DNA from: Trichoplax adhaerens
Taxonomy: Eukaryota > Animalia > Placozoa
Assembly: GCF_000150275.1 (NCBI RefSeq)
Contig: NW_002060947.1
Span: 7,983,880-8,047,879, forward strand
Direction: 5' to 3'
Length of the DNA: 64,000 nucleotides
The position numbers were made by a program, and so were the translations under genes. Shown here piece by piece: positions 2,087 through 64,000 of the stretch (its first letter is position 1; every line of letters starts with the position of its first letter). Below the pieces are notes generated by a model. It saw nothing but the letters and a program-made list of their open reading frames with translations, did no database searches and was not told the origin of the DNA.

Positions 2087-7663
<5,577 letters not shown>

Positions 7664-53296: not shown

Positions 53297-56200
53297 ATGT
53301 TGTCTCGCCTGCCCAAAAATACAATTTATTCTATTGGAGCAAATCGCTTACGAGGTAGGATAGCATTGCAATCCACAAGTGCTGCTACAACTGAAATGCA
53401 CGATGATAAAGAGAAAATAGCGAATGCTAAACCGTACAGTCAAGTACCTGGACCTAAAGGTTATCCTATCATTGGCACTCTATTGACTTTCTTAAAAAAT
53501 AATGGCTACTATCGAAAACGACCCCATTTATTATTTCATGAGTATAAGAAAAAATATGGACCCATTTATAAAGACAAATTCGCCAATCAAGAACTAATAT
53601 TTATATCAACACCAGCAGATGTTGCTGCTGTTTTTAAAGCAGAAGGAAAATATCCAGATAGAGGACCAAACATGCCATGGATCACTTATCGTGAACAACG
53701 AAAAAAATCTAAAGGTGTCTTAATCGGGTAATCTATCTTCTAAGATACTAAGACTTAACATTGATACTGATAGTTTGATATCTATTTACCTACGGGCTAG
53801 ATATCAATTTTCCTAGGAGTCTTTATTTCTTTACTTTTGCCTATTTATTCTTGTTTCAACATCAACATTTTACAATGATGTTAGCTCGATATGCACCAAA
53901 TAATTCGATGATGGTTAAAATCAACGAATTAATTACATGATTAAATGAATAGAAATATCTAGAAAAGTTTAGCAAAGCTAACTACCTGTATATATCGTTT
54001 TCGAATTGTTTTCCTACATTTGGGAGTTAGCAGAGTGTGATTACAGATCCATACAACGATGCCAAATGTGTTAGTTAAAAGCAATACTAAGAAGTGACTT
54101 TACATTTCCTAGTCTACATTAGATGTAAATCGAATATAGTCCATCTTTAATCTCGTGAAATGACGCCATTACAGCATAAGAAATTTTAAATCATTACTAC
54201 TTAAGCAGTGATACAGTCATGGTAGAATCTAGATTATTTACTGATAATCCCTTTTATTACTGCATTTACTTAACTACAATCACTTTATTTTCTTTTTTTT
54301 ATATCTATACAGCGAAGGAGAAGAATGGCGAAAGTCAAGAAGTGTCATGGATAAGAAACTGCTAAAAATGAAGGATGTTGGTGAATATTGCGAAAGAATG
54401 AATCAAGTCATTTCCGATCTAATTTCGTTCATAAAGCAAAAACAAATAACGGATAATCTAAACGGAGAATTAGGCAATCTACAGGATGCATTATACAAAT
54501 GGTCCTTTGAAAGTAAGAATAATTTATAGTTAGCAAATATATGATCGTGGTAGACTACCGTAATGAATATAGCTTTCCGCAGACGGTAGAAACTGAGCTT
54601 CAAACTGAACCGATAGACAGATTCAATATTATTTATAGTATTCATTCCACATTCCCAAGGACTTAATAGGACTAATCCTGGTACCTTATCAATAGTGGAA
54701 GTATTGATCACTATTAAAATTATGCAGGACTGAATCCCATAATTCATTTCCCAATTTTCAATTTTAGCTACGATCTTATAAAATTTTTAATGTGCTAACT
54801 ATAAAGATAGAGCTTGTTGTCGTTTGTGCTCAATGCTATACATGCATGATTGAGAATATTTATAGATAATCAATCTATAAGCATGAATATAATGTATCCT
54901 CTCCTTAGCAAATATGTCGTCCAATGAAAATTATAATCACTAAAATATTATTTTATTTTAATACTAGCCATCAACAGTGTTTTATTTAGTAAACGACTTG
55001 GATCATTTAATGATCCGCCTACTCCAATTGCTGAACAATTTTATAACAATGTTTGTGACATGATGGATGCAACTGGTCAGCTTGTGTTTTTACCACCATA
55101 TTATAAGTATATTAAGACTAAGCGATGGAAAAAATACTGTAGTTACTGGGATACATTATTTGAGATTGGTGGTAAATTAATTCAAGAAGAGCGCAATCGA
55201 TTACTATCAAATGGATTGGATCTTTCCCAAATGTCAGAAACTGGTCGTCGAACTGAAGAAATGGAGTTTTTACCCTATGTTTTATCGCGTGGGGAATTAA
55301 ATGATGAAGAGATCGCTGGCAATATTATAGAGTTGATGATGGCAGGTGTTGATACAGTAAGTTGCCATAGGTTTTAGTTTCTGCTTTGCAATGGGTTATC
55401 TGCTAAGTAGAACTTACGATGTATAAATAGAAGAGTGAATTCGAAATAGATTACATTGCAATGCATGTCGTTTCTCGGTCTAAAGAGAATATTCATATAG
55501 AATAATAAAATTGGATTATATTGTTCACAATTATTTCAATCAGTTTATAATTCGACTACTGTACTTTATGAATTGCTGTTAAGTTATACGAGTTTTCATT
55601 TTCAGTCGGCCAATACGATATTATGGACGTTATATATCTTGGGAAAGAATCCTGATATTCAAGAAAAGTTATACCAGGAAGTCAGTGGTATATTAAAAGA
55701 CGGACAATTTCCTGATAGCCAAACCGTACAGAAAATGCCTTACCTGCGAGGAGTCATTAAAGAAAGTCAAAGGTATTGGAGGATATTTTAGACTAGAAGC
55801 TTATGTATGATTAATTAATAAGTGTTATATCTTGTGGTCAATAGACTATATCCAGTATTAGTGGCAACGGCGCGTATTCTGGACAAAGATATTGTGCTAA
55901 GTGGATATCATGTTCCTGCTAAGGTATAATTTAAGGCAAATTATATAGTGATATGCATCGACTATATTCTAACTATATCATTTCGTTAAAGTCTCATATT
56001 TTGTTAAAATATGAATTTGGAATTACTTTATACTATTACTTTATACTAACATGAACACATAAATTTCCTTTACAGACTAGAATATCAGCAGTGATGTATC
56101 TGATGGCAATGGATGAATCAATTTTTGATGAACCAACAAAGATCATACCTGAACGATGGATACGATCATCGCCATCATCACAGCATCAGCGTAATCCATT

Positions 56201-56501
56201 TAGTTTTATCCCATTTGGTTTTGGACCAAGAATGTGTATTGGAAGACGCATAGCAGAATTAGAAATGGAATTATTAATTGCCAGAGTAAGATTTCTTTTT
56301 TAATTAAATTGATGATAGCTAATTAATAATTAGTGTAGGAATTGAAGATATTGTATCTGATGTTTATTATTTCTGTTTGAATATTAGTTGATTTTGCAAT
56401 TTCGAATTGACTGTCGCAATGAAACAGATGTTGGAATGACATTTAGATTTGTCGTATCGCCTGATCAAGATATTCGAATTGCGTTTCAACAAAGAGTTTA
56501 A
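53297..56501 (+). CDS. Cytochrome P450, mitochondrial clan, tandem copy C, 7 exons
   Basis: MLSRLPKN N-terminus, KPYSQVPGPKGYPIIG, WRKSR, AGVDT|S, ESQR|LYP, PERW and [10 protein letters not shown]. Stop TAA at 56499-56501. Confidence 0.93.
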
Positions 56502-59073
56502 AATTGATGATTGAGAGCAAGGCGAAGCGAAGCTTCTGCTAAAAATTGCTAAGTTATTTATTGGAAACAGACTTAACAATTTGTATCGGAAATGAAATTC
56601 ACGGATGAGTCTCTTAAGTATTAATAAAAAAATTTGAGGCTAATTTACTTAAATTTCACAGATTTGTAGTAGGAAATAGAAGCATAGTATGACTATAATG
56701 TGAAAAAGTTGATTGTTAAGTAGATCTAGAAAGCAACAAAAATATTTTATATCATCTTAATATACTATAGATGCTGTTAACATGGGATATATGTGTATAT
56801 GCTGTGGTATTGGAGTAATTTTATATTATTCACTTTGTAGTCTAATTCTGGATACTTTACTTATGAAAAATTAGTATCGACTGCATGATATGTTGCGTTG
56901 ATATATTAGTTCTATTACACTAAATGCATGATGCAATTGAGTTCAATAATAATTAAATGGTATAGTCGATCCATCAAAGAATTTTGCAATATTGTCCCAT
57001 TTAAAAGTTGAGAATTTGGTAATACTATTCAATCCTACTATAAAAGACCGAAACAGCCTTACAGTGAGCTCTGAACTTTATTCTCACTTGGAATGTAGAT
57101 AAAGTAACAGTGTATTATTTATAAGCGGTGCAATCTATACGATAACATATCAGAATGATATCGAAGCATAAATTTTCTGTGTTGAAATATTAGTTGTTAA
57201 CAAAAGTCTTCATAAGAAGTTTGTTGTATATACGTAACACACGGTAACACACACCATAACTATTTACAGTAGGGTTAAGCTAGATAGTAGTAGGATACTA
57301 TAAGACAGAAAGATCGTTACCAAAGACTTGGAAATAAGTCAAAGTGGACATTAAGTTCTATCTGCTGGCATGGTACCATCGACTTCATGTTCATTTACGG
57401 CCTAATGTGCATAACTTAGTACAGTATACCCTTCTATAATTCTTATATGATACCAAGGACTGCAGTCTGAAAGATTCATAGGTCATCTACTTTCCAGTAC
57501 ATTCAAAAAGAAACACTAATTATACTACAAAATAGATTAGCCACTATCCTACATAATAAACTATGCGAATCTGATTGATCATTCGTTTACTGTTACTTTG
57601 TGAAAAAGGACCTAAAAAATATTAAAGCCACTATAACTTTGAATAGTTCTACCAAGTACAATACCTTGATTAGGACAAGAAGGAATAAAACAGTGATATA
57701 ATAAGGGTATAGTTAGGTAAAAGCTTTGAGATCATTCCATTCACAAGCAAAAGACACAATACACAGGTAGGATCCTACTAGCACTGATGTAGCATTGATT
57801 TAGCATTGATTGGGCTCCCGCAAATACTCCCCTTTACTATATAATGTCGATTATATCATTTATCGTAGCCGTTTCCAACATTTTTATACTTCCTACCATG
57901 ATATCATACCGTATTTATGCGATTGTACGTATGCCACGCTGCAAAATAAACGGAAGAATGAGGCATTATCGACGACTGAATTAAGAATTCAGACTAATTA
58001 AGAAAATATTTGCACTTCGACGTAAAAACTTGCACAGATGCACTCACTTAATTTTTCGACTAGTACAGTATATTAGATTTCTTTATGTACATTATAATAT
58101 TACAAATAACCCAAAGGAATGTGCAATAATATATTGCATATTTGCTTCAATAAAATTGCAATAATATCATATTTACTTTGCACTTATTATGCCAATTCCT
58201 TTATATGACGTATATTTTGTTTAATTTACTATCCTGTTATTATACGATATGATTACTAAGCATTTATTAATATTCATTTCACTTCCTGCTGCTTACACAG
58301 TTAACGAACCAGTATACACGTATTGCAAGATCAAAGAATTTATGCCGCATATGATATTCAATCTTTCCTAAATGTGATATGCTTATCCAGTTTTTATGAA
58401 AACTGATTGCTGGTAATTTGTGCGGGTTTGCTGGTACTAATATAATTAAAAGGAGCTGATTCCTAATTCCTAGGATTTCCAAAGGCTTTTCTAATAGCGA
58501 TTTAATAATTAATCTACCTATAGATTTTGTATCTGGTAGTTTTTGAAATACACATTTATCAATAAATAACTAATCAGTCTATACCCAAAGTACAGTAGAT
58601 GCCGATTAGAATCTGGGTAGATAATGAGAATAGATTAGTACAATTTAATTTAGTCGTCTCTTTTGTGATTCCTCTATCCAATAGTAGCAATAAATCATGT
58701 AAGTTTACAGTGCAATAGATCACCTAATTACAAAGTGTTCAATTGTATTCATTGATAATTGTGTAACAAAAAACCTTCTTTACTTTTACATCAACAGTGT
58801 TTAATGTAGTATACGTTCCCACTCATTTGAACGGGTACTTGATTACTTATGAAGGAACTCTGGAATGGATAATACCCCATAACGTATAGATGGCGTGTAT
58901 TAGCACATAAGAGATTTTCTCTTACCTTGATAGGTTTAAAATCTAAGGCTATCCTTTAGTACAAGTTCTATACAGTTATTCTAGGGATACTGAGATTGGT
59001 TTTTTTCCGGGTTATTCGCTCAACTTCCTTCTGATTTCACCACTATACAACACACACAACATCAAGCACCAGT

Positions 59074-61932
59074 ATGGCTACCGAAAATCCTCTCGAAAAC
59101 CACCTTGAAAAGCCTGCAATTCATTTAATTTTTAAATCAGCAAAAATCGATAACGTTCGTGCGGACGAAAATGCTGAAAAATTTATCAGTAATCTTATTC
59201 AAAAGTATAATGAAGACAAGAAAAATATATACAAACGGGTAAGTTTACACACATCTCGTTGGAAGACTAAGTGGCATGACGAAATTCATATGGAAATTTA
59301 CTATTGTAAGACTAGTTTGGATAAATCAAATTCTATCGCTCTTGTTAAAAAGCTTTCTAATAAAGATTATACTGAAGAGTTTCAGGAACGCCGGGTCCAG
59401 TTTGCTTATTTTCTCTATTTCGAGACTAAAGGGTCAAACGAAAATAATTCAGAAACGAGATGGAATATTTTTGCTTTGACCACCCGATATGCGTTTCATC
59501 TCGTTCGTCCTTATTGCGATTACTATTTTCGTACCAAGATTGCTTATAGATTGGTTGATCCCAAATTTTATAAAGTAGAATCCAAACGATTAATTGGAGC
59601 TAAAGAAGGTGATATTAGTATGTATAGAAAGCCCTTTAACTTACGGCTCAATAGTTACTTTAGTTTGTGGATTTTGTATAAGAATTTTGATGGGACTGTT
59701 AAGCGAGGAAGTTCCCTTCATCGTGTCTTAGACCTTCCTGAAAATGAAAAGATTCATCTTCATGTTGGTGTGGGAATGGTCCGTATTGGAAGGGAGCTTA
59801 CACTTGCACAATACCTAGAAAATGTTCTTCCGCTTTTATTCCAAATCAGTCAGGGTGGGAGTACCGAAAAACTTGACGGAACCTGTGAAACAAACGATTC
59901 GGCTTTTGAGGTCTTTTCTAATATTCGTCGAATAAATGCGTCTGAGAAGCAAGAATTAGACCGCCACCTCATTGGAATGATCTGGGAAGCTGTTAAATCG
60001 GATTCCGTTTCTTCCATTCCCTTCTTATATCTATCCCATCGGCTTTACCATCAGTATTATGCATCTACACGTTTAAAACTTCAATTTAAACCCCCTGATA
60101 ATATTAGCAATCAGATTTGTAAGCGAATGTTCAAGTGTTATTGGGAATATCGCCCCACTTTAGAAGAACTCATCAAACAGCTTCGACATTGGAACCTGGA
60201 TAAAATTTCCGTAAAAGATTTTGAAATTGCTATCTGTTCTGTTTCCGTCAGCACTGATACTATACGACGTAAATGCCCTCTTCTTCAGTATATTCAAGGA
60301 CAAGCCCCTTTTCAGGGAAATATATACTATCGTATGGAAGGGTCCTGGCTAGAAGCTTCCAATCAACATTTAGCGGCAACTGAAAGAAGTTTTCTTAAAA
60401 TTTTAGATAATTGTTTGGCGACCGAAAACAATAAGAAGGGGCATCTCCTACCTTACCCTTGGATTTCAAAAGAAAAATGGGTTTCTTTTTCTTTTCTTGA
60501 CGTCCCTGAAGGAATTTCACGAAAGGACTTTGAATATGCTATTATTGATCTGACAAATATAGAAACAGCAATCATTGACGACAAAAAAGTAGTTCGGATG
60601 GCCTATCCTGTCCGAGCTTTACTCGACAATCAAACACAATCTACTTGTAAAAAATTAAAGAAACGATGGGAAGAGCTACGTGCATGGTTAAACGAATACC
60701 TTGATCAAAATGTCGAAGTCTCTACCTTAGAAACAGTATTTGAAGATGACACTGATAAATTTTTTAAATTACTTCAAAAACCTTTCCATATACTCGATCG
60801 TAATGAATCTGAAAAAGAGGAAAGAATCGCTCCAATTACAAATGATGGAATAGTTCAATATTCCGAATTATCAAAACTGGCTTTTTCAACGGCAGCACCG
60901 GAAACTATAAAGAAAAATATTGAAGATCTTTCAAAATTTCTTTCAGAAAATGAAAAAGTCACAAAGGATGACCTTGAAAAGGTAATTCCAAATATAAGAT
61001 ATCGAAATGTTGCCTACAAGTGGCTCCAAAGAAAGCATGAATTGTCCAAAAATGCCCCTAGCCGTTACCGATACCTCATGCGAGGGCCTGTTCCTGAAGA
61101 GCTATTAACGAAAGATAATGAGAAGGCTTTAAGAGCCTTTTTAGAAGACTGTCACCAAAAATATAGCCAAGTGATGGATGAAGAGCAATATAACCGCTGT
61201 TACCTTAATCATCCAGATTATTTAGTCTTCGATCAAATTTTCCCGGGAGGACGAGAACAAATAGAGCTTTTTGATCTCCTGTACAAAGGAGATGATGAAG
61301 AACTTCCGTACGCAGTTAAAGAAGAGTTTGGTAATAGCACTGGAATTGCCTGTAATCAAATTCGTGTCGCTATGAAAGCTTTAACTTCAGCTATCCAGAA
61401 TTCCGGGCATCAACTCTTGCATAATCTTTATAACAAAGTTGTGAATACTGAACCAAAAAGTGACTTTCGTGTCCGAGCAAAAGAGCGTCTTGAAGAAATG
61501 ACAGCTGAAGATTTTGTCAATCTTTTTATCGAACGGAAGATAGTTTTTGTGTATGCTTTTCTTGATACTAACGATGCCGATCGTCGTATGGAAAGCGATT
61601 TGGAACTTATCCAAGAGGTCACAGAGGAAGTGCTACAAAAAGCAGATATAGATAAACCTCAACAGGTTCTTCAAGATCTTCAAGTAAAGGGCTACCTTGA
61701 TGAAACGTCTAAGCTGACAGATAAATTTCTCAGGGAAAAGGAAGAAGACTTTAAAGGTACAATAAATGTCCCAGGGCTGTATAAAATATTAATGCGAAAC
61801 TGTTCCCTTTATAAATCTCTGATTGGAAAACTGGAAATCATTGAACTTTTTCATAGCTTTAAAAAGACAGAGTTTGAATTTCAGATTCAACAGCTTGATC
61901 GCCCTGGAAAGGTTGTAAAACGCGACATTTAG
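59074..61932 (+). CDS. Intronless 952-aa protein resembling the bacterial TIGR04141/DUF6119 family (putative PD-(D/E)xK-type nuclease C-terminus)
   Basis: Single uninterrupted 2859-bp ORF. The motif order IFALT, YYRMEGSW, LPYPW, EEQYN...YLVFD...IELFDLL...AVK...ACNQIRVA...IVFVYA recalls that family. The assignment is from remembered motifs, not from a search. Confidence 0.75.
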   Translation: MATENPLENHLEKPAIHLIFKSAKIDNVRADENAEKFISNLIQKYNEDKKNIYKRVSLHTSRWKTKWHDEIHMEIYYCKTSLDKSNSIALVKKLSNKDYTEEFQERRVQFAYFLYFETKGSNENNSETRWNIFALTTRYAFHLVRPYCDYYFRTKIAYRLVDPKFYKVESKRLIGAKEGDISMYRKPFNLRLNSYFSLWILYKNFDGTVKRGSSLHRVLDLPENEKIHLHVGVGMVRIGRELTLAQYLENVLPLLFQISQGGSTEKLDGTCETNDSAFEVFSNIRRINASEKQELDRHLIGMIWEAVKSDSVSSIPFLYLSHRLYHQYYASTRLKLQFKPPDNISNQICKRMFKCYWEYRPTLEELIKQLRHWNLDKISVKDFEIAICSVSVSTDTIRRKCPLLQYIQGQAPFQGNIYYRMEGSWLEASNQHLAATERSFLKILDNCLATENNKKGHLLPYPWISKEKWVSFSFLDVPEGISRKDFEYAIIDLTNIETAIIDDKKVVRMAYPVRALLDNQTQSTCKKLKKRWEELRAWLNEYLDQNVEVSTLETVFEDDTDKFFKLLQKPFHILDRNESEKEERIAPITNDGIVQYSELSKLAFSTAAPETIKKNIEDLSKFLSENEKVTKDDLEKVIPNIRYRNVAYKWLQRKHELSKNAPSRYRYLMRGPVPEELLTKDNEKALRAFLEDCHQKYSQVMDEEQYNRCYLNHPDYLVFDQIFPGGREQIELFDLLYKGDDEELPYAVKEEFGNSTGIACNQIRVAMKALTSAIQNSGHQLLHNLYNKVVNTEPKSDFRVRAKERLEEMTAEDFVNLFIERKIVFVYAFLDTNDADRRMESDLELIQEVTEEVLQKADIDKPQQVLQDLQVKGYLDETSKLTDKFLREKEEDFKGTINVPGLYKILMRNCSLYKSLIGKLEIIELFHSFKKTEFEFQIQQLDRPGKVVKRDI

Positions 61933-64000
61933 AAAGAATTCCTTAAGATTTTCCCCGAAGCAAAAAACGACAGAAATAACGTTTTTTTAAATGCTACTCT
62001 CCGGTTCAACCGTCGTAAAAATATTTCTTTACTATTTTAAATTATTTCAAGCTCTAAGAATGTGCAATGAAGGTTAATTTTTAGAATATTCCTTCAAGTT
62101 CTTGTATTATAATTATTTTAGCTTAGTTTTTGTATCATGATAAGTATTCTAGCTTTAAAAAAAGTATAATTTATTCGGTTGATTGCAAAGGTAGATTTTA
62201 CTTAGTATCTTAGTATATTGTAAACCCGACTGCTTTATTCGGACTAGAAGTTAAGATAATCCGTAGCATAATTTTTGTTAACAATCAGATAATATAATTT
62301 TGTAATTTAAGCGATGCATTTAGTTAATAGAATATATGTGTGTTAATTTTGATCATTAATTACAGTAGAAGTTAATGTTACTTTGTAATTTCATACAGTA
62401 TGAACCCAAAACATTTGATCTGGAATTGTTATTTTGTCTTAGTGTATACTGTAGAAATGTATAGTTTCAAGCTAAACTATACTTAGTATTAATTCAGTAG
62501 TTTTCGGGAATCTAGGGTATAATTTATCTTATCATGTATGTTTGATTGCTAGTTTAATTTGGAGTGCTTAGGAATGATAGTTGGATAGTCTAACACCACC
62601 AATTGCTCTACGTAGCATATAAAAGGTGGCGTAGTTCGGTAATTGAGAGTAATTGAAGTTAGAGAAGACGAGAAAAGTGCAGGATGATCGTGAGTTACCT
62701 CACTAATTGATAGTTTGGTTGGTTGGTTGGGGCAGTAGCTCTGCCCCATTTTGTTATCCATAGAAGTTTTGCTAAGATTGTTGTTAAAGCTATAATTAAG
62801 TGGTGTTCTTCCCCTAATTTGTTTTGTTAGGACTTCAGTTGTTGGTAGTTTAATTTAATATAGAAAGTTTTATTATTTTTGAATCTAATGCTACTAATGG
62901 ATTAACATAACGCGAGAAACTTTGGCAATCACTTCCCTTTATAGCCTTCGAAAAGGCTTTATTTCAAGATTTTGCCCTTCAGCATATATTAGATGCTGCA
63001 CATTTTATTCTTTCTTGCAAATATAATTACTATAAGATCCTCGCATTGATTATGTAAGATATAGATGTTGACATAGATAACATAATCATTAATGACATAA
63101 TTTTTTAGCGTCGCCTGGTCAAGAATTTGAATGATATTTCAACAGAGGGCTTAAGGTGACGATTAAAAGCTAAACTATGTTTTTACTTTTAAATTTATGA
63201 AAATTTATCAGGTTAACATACGTCTATGCGCGTTTGCTCTTAGAGGAGTATGTTGCGGCTTAAGTAGAGGGTTCATCTCTTCATATTTAGAGGTAAACGA
63301 ATAGCTCCGTTAGCAGTACAGCGTTGATAATATAGTTTATAGCGTTTTTATTACGAATCTATACGAGAATGTGTAGCAGTTTCGGCTAATTACAGTAGTA
63401 ATGGAAGTACGCTGGCATTAAGAAGTAGAATAGTCGACTATGCTTATAATGTAATTTCATTATTGCTCATGATGAAATAGTGGAGTTATACTATTGGTAC
63501 TATGCATGCATAAGGTCATAAGAGACAGCTATATAAGGTGATATTTTTGTGTAATGTCTTAATCTAACTGTTAGATAATATTGAATTGTTATCGAGGAGA
63601 TTAAGCCAATTATCCGGTTTATCTTAGCCACTTTCTGCTGTCATTATGAGTGTAGAAAAGTGGATTCTTCTCTTGTCAAGCTATCTATAGCATTAATAAA
63701 CGATACATTTAAGGTTAAACAAGGTGTACCTAATCTTGTGTCACGTTAGAGATTTACTCAATTTTAATAACTCAGATTTTGAGATAGGCATTTACGAACC
63801 TAATATGAAGATTTAACATCACTCAAGATGTAACTAATAATAACCATCTAACGTTTAAGGTTATTGTCTGCCAAAAGTCAGACACATAACAATCATTAAT
63901 GATCAATATGTTTGATCATACAACTCTGACTGTAACTTAATTCTAAACTAGAACGAGGAACAGAGCTTAGTAACAGCTAGGTACTTTAATAAATAACTAT

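Follow-up and report, generated by a model that had tools for sequence, protein, structure and literature searches.

We analysed a window of 64,000 nucleotides from the placozoan Trichoplax adhaerens (contig NW_002060947.1, at 7.98-8.05 Mb of its ~8.57 Mb) and found that it carries one intact, intron-free open reading frame (ORF) at 59074-61932 on the plus strand, which begins with ATG and encodes a protein of 952 amino acids (aa). The original prediction had described it from the sequence as an intact single-frame gene bearing motifs of the prokaryotic TIGR04141/DUF6119 proteins, and hence as a candidate acquisition from bacteria. Both the frame and the motifs were confirmed, with YYRMEGSW at residues 418-425 (60325-60348), LPYPW at 459-463 (60448-60462), EEQYN at 703-707 (61180-61194), IELFD at 730-734 (61261-61275), AVK at 747-749 (61312-61320) and the glutamine Q762 all in place, and they fall on invariant or near-invariant columns of the family (W425, W463, E703, Y706, D720, E731, D734, K749 and Q762). 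As detailed below, the gene is of bacterial origin, is physically integrated in the animal chromosome, has lost the C-terminal USP deubiquitinase of its bacterial relatives and retains the conserved residues of its family; it appears to be a bacterium-to-animal gene that was kept under selection.

The ORF is the sole one of at least 100 aa in 57000-64000, and apart from it no ORF longer than 144 aa was found between 40 and 64 kb. It is present as a single copy in the assembly (105.6 Mb, 1414 pieces). As stops number 42-109 in the remaining five frames of this stretch and about 0.07 per codon in the flanking non-coding DNA (~1 per 14 codons), an open frame of 952 codons lies far beyond chance. 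Its start aligns with the N-terminus of the bacterial relatives, the frame staying open for just 13 codons further 5', and its GC content is 0.367, compared to 0.31-0.32 in the flanks.

Sequence searches returned 262 bacterial representatives at E ≤ 0.001 and, across 5.8 billion clusters and 1.84 billion representatives, no eukaryotic homologue besides the window's own protein, that is, no sign of the broad vertical inheritance in animals that would speak against an acquired gene. The best relatives are proteins of ~1360-1450 aa that are encoded in metagenome-assembled genomes of Simkaniaceae, Chlamydiales and Parachlamydiales and are 38-50% identical over residues 1-946; end-to-end alignment of the animal protein with the first ~940 residues of Simkaniaceae/Chlamydiales proteins gives an identity of 42-50%. 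Named homologues are without exception chlamydial, and all ten loci found in a collection with one bacterial or archaeal genome per species belong to Chlamydiota or to metagenomic bins. The homologues P0002 and P0003 have housekeeping genes around them, on contigs that are compact and bacterial.

We placed the ORF in a maximum-likelihood (ML) tree of 35 rows and 903 columns (LG+G4, 1000 ultrafast bootstraps plus SH-aLRT, a Shimodaira-Hasegawa-like approximate likelihood-ratio test), from which the long-branch rows L012, P0043, P0031 and P0039 were left out and in which the two open frames of the broken gene of Simkaniaceae bacterium M30B1 were entered as separate rows and never joined. The ORF is sister to M30B1 together with P0002 and P0005 (support 100/100), P0003 joins this group next (90/87), and three more Simkaniaceae/Chlamydiales sequences complete a nine-row clade (100/100). 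The ORF thereby lies inside clades of 5, 9 and 10 rows, each with a support of 100/100, and a quick tree with all 39 rows agrees with the ML placement. The bacterial origin put forward in the original prediction is hence supported by the nesting of the gene in a Simkaniaceae-type clade of chlamydial relatives. Because the ORF branches from within the chlamydial sequences, the core family occurs widely in free-living bacterial phyla and no other eukaryote was found to carry it, we conclude that the transfer ran from bacterium to animal.

Independent sequencing data link the gene to the animal chromosome. Eighteen runs from 7 studies contain most of a 5-kb stretch that comprises the ORF and both flanks, and the contigs of four runs were compared along 57300-63200. 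In run X16, which stems from a different study and carries a different organism label, a 2105-base contig begins in the upstream spacer (57513) and reaches into the ORF (59618), a second contig (61822-62063) crosses the stop codon, and the depth of the ORF (64.5) equals that of the flanks. At 59694-60053 the same run holds two variants (0 and 25 differences) at depths of 33.8 and 33.9, the pattern expected of two alleles at a diploid nuclear locus. The window contains no other chlamydial-like coding scraps when queried with the translated ORFs around eight chlamydial homologues, and a transposon carrying the ORF was rejected, as no terminal inverted or direct repeats flank it. Given contigs that bridge the junctions, a flank-equal depth, two alleles, an adjoining host repeat, and the absence of chlamydial scraps and of flanking repeats, contamination or a chimeric join, which the original prediction had named as a danger to its claim, is very unlikely: contigs assembled independently bridge both junctions at host copy depth. 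At 61305-61307 the second allele (runs X5 and X16) carries a net 3-base in-frame insertion, placed exactly at the point where the bacterial homologues have one residue more than the window allele (..DEEL-PYAVKEEF).

The bacterial proteins run ~400 residues past the end of the animal protein, through a linker into a USP/UCH deubiquitinase (PF00443, E down to 1e-34) that is present in 29 of 36 homologues, and a Protein Data Bank (PDB) search with the family profile gave matches only to this USP domain (USP8, USP7 and similar). The animal protein retains the last motif common to both, DRPGKV, and has just five more residues before it stops at the domain border; a tblastn search with the USP part gave no USP remnant further downstream. 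The chlamydial DUF6119-USP fusions (e.g., Simkaniaceae M30B1 KFB93_02560/02555 and Chlamydiales MCP5506501.1) form the sister clade of the animal protein and share with it the same insertion and the same A747/G757 residues, both described below, but carry a C-terminal USP/UCH domain that the animal protein lacks.

Among 251 sampled Chlamydiota genomes, a DUF6119-like module occurs in about 19 and USP domains in about 102; the DUF6119-like matches lie for the most part within single open frames of 1017-1607 codons, and the majority of these frames match the USP part as well. Judged by these sequences, the DUF6119 module is repeatedly fused in chlamydiae to a eukaryote-type USP deubiquitinase, an architecture of which we found no description in the literature. 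The known Simkania negevensis proteins SnUSP1-3 are arranged differently, with catalytic fragments near the N-terminus (residues 167-529 in SnUSP1 and 187-522 in SnUSP3) and not, as in the DUF6119-USP fusions, a C-terminal USP (PMC10643670). In the genome of M30B1 (CP073763.1, labelled complete; L005 6000-10082), the closest named bacterial orthologue is split into two overlapping open frames of 576 and 810 codons, owing either to a frameshift in a pseudogene or to an error of assembly. P0005 (L014 339-3287) is a 982-aa relative that has no equivalent of window residues ~438-850, although the N-terminal domain, the module's final ~100 residues and the USP domain are all present, and is either a natural internal-deletion variant or a misassembly.

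Kinship with DUF6119/TIGR04141, as claimed in the original prediction, stands through the homologues, whereas the curated models miss the window protein itself, which gave no direct match to Pfam (PF19614) or NCBIfam (TIGR04141) with E up to 1. Of 36 homologues, 13 match PF19614 (best 4e-15) and 12 match TIGR04141 (best 7.6e-9). The bona fide DUF6119 proteins P0136 and P0146, which score E 8e-27 and, over the whole profile, E 5e-38 with Pfam DUF6119, are direct phmmer matches to residues ~697-838 (E 8e-14 and 2e-11, respectively). Aligning the family with six canonical members by hhalign gave a probability of 100% (E 3.5e-48) over 573 aligned columns (11-940 to 8-611) and left one large unmatched insertion of ~240 residues, at about 447-690, that is also present in the chlamydial homologues. 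The central region is aligned by hhalign as well, and its counterpart in P0002, P0004 and P0013 is matched by positions ~206-394 of the Pfam DUF6119 profile. In a protein language-model atlas, the top 30 entries were all DUF6119 clusters (score 0.93, 202 shared features).

The animal protein shares with the family the ordered series of Y..W hairpin, E-x2-YN, V-x-D, E-x2-D, x-V-K and Q. Canonical DUF6119 proteins, which are spread over Bacteroidota, Actinomycetota and Bacillota, differ from it in being about 530-650 aa long (compared to 952 aa), in having no insertion, in carrying His and Arg where the animal protein has A747 and G757, and in that the host of the animal protein is a eukaryote. 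The defence-type role entertained in the original prediction gained no support: PADLOC gave no meaningful match for the window protein, and none of its families for the canonical members and the homologues, save one chance-level GajA row. The contigs of the canonical DUF6119 members, just about 2 kb long, offered no informative gene neighbourhood and gave no plasmid match.

An AlphaFold2 model of the protein (67-row alignment; pLDDT, the predicted local distance difference test, 92.4; pTM, the predicted template modelling score, 0.83) suggests that the N-terminal ~260-330 residues form an RdgC-like domain. The best PDB row for this part was Escherichia coli RdgC (2owl), with a Foldseek prob of 0.98 and E 5e-3, which VIA-align superposes over 187 residues in model range 10-261 at Z 6.7 and a root-mean-square deviation (rmsd) of 4.8; five phage RdgC proteins in BFVD reached a Foldseek prob of 0.95-1.0, and the RdgC E values ranged from 1e-3 to 5e-3. 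Other TBP-like domains match too, among them the N-terminal domain of RnlA (VIA Z 7.2). The likeness to RdgC lies in the fold of residues ~10-261/330, at an identity of about 9% and with no Pfam RdgC match for the window protein, and the animal domain differs in being fused to a nuclease-like domain. For the whole model, Foldseek against the PDB returned nothing at E ≤ 0.001.

For the C-terminal domain, modelled alone at a pLDDT of 88.5, a PD-(D/E)xK-like fold is probable. Nearly all of its best VIA matches belong to this superfamily (NucS with Z 7.2, SfsA 6.3, FokI 6.1 and Upx 6.0, followed by XisH-like, BspD6I, CdiA-CT, SduA, Can2/Card1, HamA, McrC and several type II restriction enzymes). 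In the model, E703 belongs to the preceding helix, D734 immediately precedes strand 2, K749 closes strand 3 and Q762 is part of the next helix. Such a placement of residues is the usual layout of the PD-(D/E)xK superfamily. The known nucleases differ in carrying an Asp or Glu two residues before the Lys, a position that is Ala here and His in most relatives, and the DUF6119 module sets itself apart from them by the extra conserved acids E703, D720 and E731, with VIA Z values of only 5-7.

The residues that would form the active site are conserved without exception: D720, E731, D734, K749 and Q762 occur in 58 of 58 aligned relatives and E703 in all 56 that cover the position, and the Y706 and N707 of the E-x2-YN motif are also present in the window protein. 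Position 747 is His in 47 of the 58, Gln in 5 and Ala in 6, the last group being the window protein and its nearest Simkaniaceae-type relatives; position 757 is Arg in 45 of 58 and Gly in the window protein and the same nearest relatives. The original prediction had remarked on the Ala before VK as a possible alteration in the animal, and while the change is real, it is not animal-specific: since the nearest Simkaniaceae-type relatives share the Ala, the His-to-Ala change was inherited from the donor lineage and is no animal novelty.

Along the protein, the window sequence agrees with the consensus in 85% of the family's most conserved columns and in 8-24% of the variable ones, and it matches 81% of the columns in which the four nearest bacterial proteins agree, a substitution pattern that suggests purifying selection along the ORF branch. 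The GC content at third codon positions (GC3) of the ORF (0.30) is lower than that of the bacterial homologues (0.34-0.40) and close to that of the host flanks (0.31-0.32); this host-level value fits a long residence. Of the six listed ORF variants between alleles or strains, four change an amino acid. The protein sequence has no N-terminal hydrophobic signal, and the basic motif KKLKKRW (residues 526-532, 60649-60669), which is common to the animal protein and its chlamydial relatives, might serve as a monopartite nuclear localisation signal.

Two runs that carry a metatranscriptomic label have contigs inside the ORF, at 59071-59351, 59405-59651, 59694-60114 and 61501-61823 in X19, and at 59352-59618, 59694-60053 (both alleles) and 61396-61603 in X20. 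Most flank bins are without contigs in either run, X19 having one upstream (58426-58849). At 59736-59814, one low-depth contig from an RNA run skips 77 bases, with ends that read CT..AC on the plus strand and GT..AG on the minus strand; the skip could stem from splicing of an antisense RNA, or be an artefact that the divergent alleles at 59694-60053 produced.

Table 1. The ORF, the parts of its predicted protein, and adjoining features (window coordinates).
Feature	Position	Strand	Description
ORF	59074..61932	+	includes stop codon; single copy
N-terminal RdgC-like (TBP-like) domain	59101..59856	+	residues ~10-261; predicted nucleic-acid-binding part
Central DUF6119 region	59857..60411	+	residues 262-446; conserved beta-hairpin YYRMEGSW 418-425, W425 near-invariant
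Insertion absent from canonical DUF6119	60412..61143	+	residues 447-690; mostly helical; LPYPW 459-463, KKLKKRW 526-532
PD-(D/E)xK-like core (probable)	61174..61563	+	residues 701-830; E703, D720, E731, D734, K749, Q762
C-terminal helical part and last strand of DUF6119 module	61564..61911	+	residues 831-946
P450 gene, intron-split, upstream neighbour	53297..56303	+	four exon-sized ORFs match successive parts of PF00067
Dispersed host repeat, 739 bp	62062..62800	.	at least 40 copies on many scaffolds, 76-91% identity

The surroundings of the ORF are those described in the original prediction, with intron-split pieces of a P450 gene, AT-rich flanks and no bacterial ORFs nearby (Table 1). The P450 gene lies 2.8 kb upstream and the dispersed host repeat 130 bp downstream; the latter reaches a depth of 1000-1600, compared to ~70 for unique DNA (ORF and flanks), contains no long ORF and is probably a non-autonomous mobile element. 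A USP match at 4087-4176 was considered as a relic of the transfer and rejected, as it belongs to a native, intron-split USP19-like gene at 4081-5949 (+) that is unrelated to the transfer. This gene has a UCH Cys box, a further UCH exon and a MYND zinc finger, and a second UCH Cys-box match lies at 29524-29471 (-), about 25 kb away from it.

The explanation that we favour, and consider likely as a whole, is a horizontal gene transfer from a Simkaniaceae-like bacterium into the placozoan nuclear genome, in which the USP part was lost and a module was retained that would act as a DNA-binding, metal-dependent nuclease. The donor-type protein is a fusion of ~1360-1450 aa, composed of a divergent DUF6119/TIGR04141 module and a C-terminal USP deubiquitinase, of which the animal copy keeps the complete DUF6119 module only, ending at the domain border. 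In the proposed mechanism, the RdgC-like N-terminal domain would hold the nucleic acid, the PD-(D/E)xK-like domain would bind metal through D734 with E731, D720 and E703, and K749 would be the catalytic lysine, supported by Q762 on the following helix. In the animal, the most plausible role would be to cleave foreign or damaged nucleic acid, as a nuclease of the cytosol or the nucleus.

Two accounts dispute the transfer itself. An intron-free gene with bacterial relatives, in animals that harbour intracellular bacteria including Simkaniaceae, could be symbiont or contaminant DNA that was wrongly joined into an animal scaffold, but this account is already largely refuted and keeps hardly any probability: independent contigs cross both junctions, the depth there is that of the host with two alleles at half of it each, the stretch occurs together with its flanks in data of 7 studies, no other bacterial ORF is nearby while a host repeat begins 130 bp downstream, and the gene is at just 50% identity to any known bacterium, is host-like in GC3 and misses the USP domain. 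The reverse direction, in which chlamydiae took up a eukaryotic gene, is just as improbable, even though the bacterial fusions carry a USP domain of eukaryotic type and chlamydiae often acquire host genes (PMC10643670): the DUF6119 module is widespread in free-living bacterial phyla, the searches gave no further eukaryote with it, the window sequence branches from within the chlamydial sequences and not at their base, and the animal copy is without the single eukaryotic-type domain. Granting a real transfer, the gene could be a selectively neutral insert, unexpressed or dispensable and caught before its decay, to which its long own branch, the patchy contigs that make up the RNA evidence and the four nonsynonymous variants out of six would lend some colour. 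We regard this as quite improbable, given a frame of 952 codons that stayed open where stops occur about every 14 codons, substitutions that strongly avoid the conserved family columns, an allelic indel that is in frame, and a GC3 that has come down to the host level, implying long residence.

The main rival on function, unlikely yet the most serious of the alternatives, is that the module is non-catalytic and owes its retention to binding DNA or to serving as a decoy or scaffold. Both His747 and Arg757 of the family are missing from the window protein and from the five bacterial proteins closest to it, and an RdgC-like domain alone can bind DNA; against this, the likely metal-binding and catalytic residues (E703, D720, E731, D734, K749 and Q762) are complete, and the same substitutions occur in several intact bacterial proteins and are hence compatible with the donor function. 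Several points weigh against the nuclease that we propose. The substitutions A747 and G757 may mean that the chemistry of this clade is altered or that catalysis was lost. Foldseek finds nothing significant for the C-terminal domain and its VIA Z is at most 7.2, so that the PD-(D/E)xK fold, which the original prediction had suggested from the D...xVK pair and which the top VIA matches and the strand-helix order favour, is probable but not proven. The literature yielded no functional study and no nuclease activity for DUF6119/TIGR04141, which receives three incidental mentions only, and PADLOC holds no model for the DUF6119 family. The branch of the ORF measures 0.60, compared to 0.10-0.27 in the sister sequences, and could reflect relaxed constraint. 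Finally, transcription of the ORF is only suggested by the patchy contigs, as these cannot exclude DNA carry-over or show transcript ends.

Two Simkaniaceae clades have been described as putative placozoan endosymbionts (bioRxiv 10.1101/2025.02.27.640636), which therefore offer a plausible route for the transfer that we propose. In its passages on bacterial genes, Driscoll et al. 2013 reports rsmE, cox3 and fkpA-trmH as Trichoplax genes of chlamydial origin and also lists the bacterial genes dapF, murA and others (PMC3641634). The chlamydial passages of that paper do not name the present gene, and the words 'ubiquitin' and 'Simkania' are absent from its main text (PMC3641634). Like the genes covered in those passages, for some of which a chlamydial source was proposed, ours is an intron-poor bacterial gene in the placozoan nuclear genome; those genes, however, encode metabolic or housekeeping enzymes, whereas the present one encodes a large nuclease-like protein.

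A more far-reaching suggestion, and a rather improbable one, is that the host domesticated a weapon of its symbiont, turning it into an innate-immune nuclease or decoy against the chlamydial symbionts that placozoans carry. In this reading, the source Simkaniaceae protein may act inside host cells and the animal reuses the half without the deubiquitinase; if true, this would provide the first functional handle on the DUF6119 family. For the DUF6119/TIGR04141 family, our models offer a first structural reading, with predicted RdgC-like and PD-(D/E)xK-like domains, and the Trichoplax protein is the sole eukaryotic member found by our searches. Placozoans are among the simplest animals and host intracellular bacteria, and a retained gene of this kind dates a past contact with chlamydiae. 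Overall, the gene extends the short list of bacterial genes that an early-branching animal has kept by a large protein outside metabolism; should it encode an active nuclease, a eukaryote would once more have reused a prokaryotic enzyme of the conflict type.

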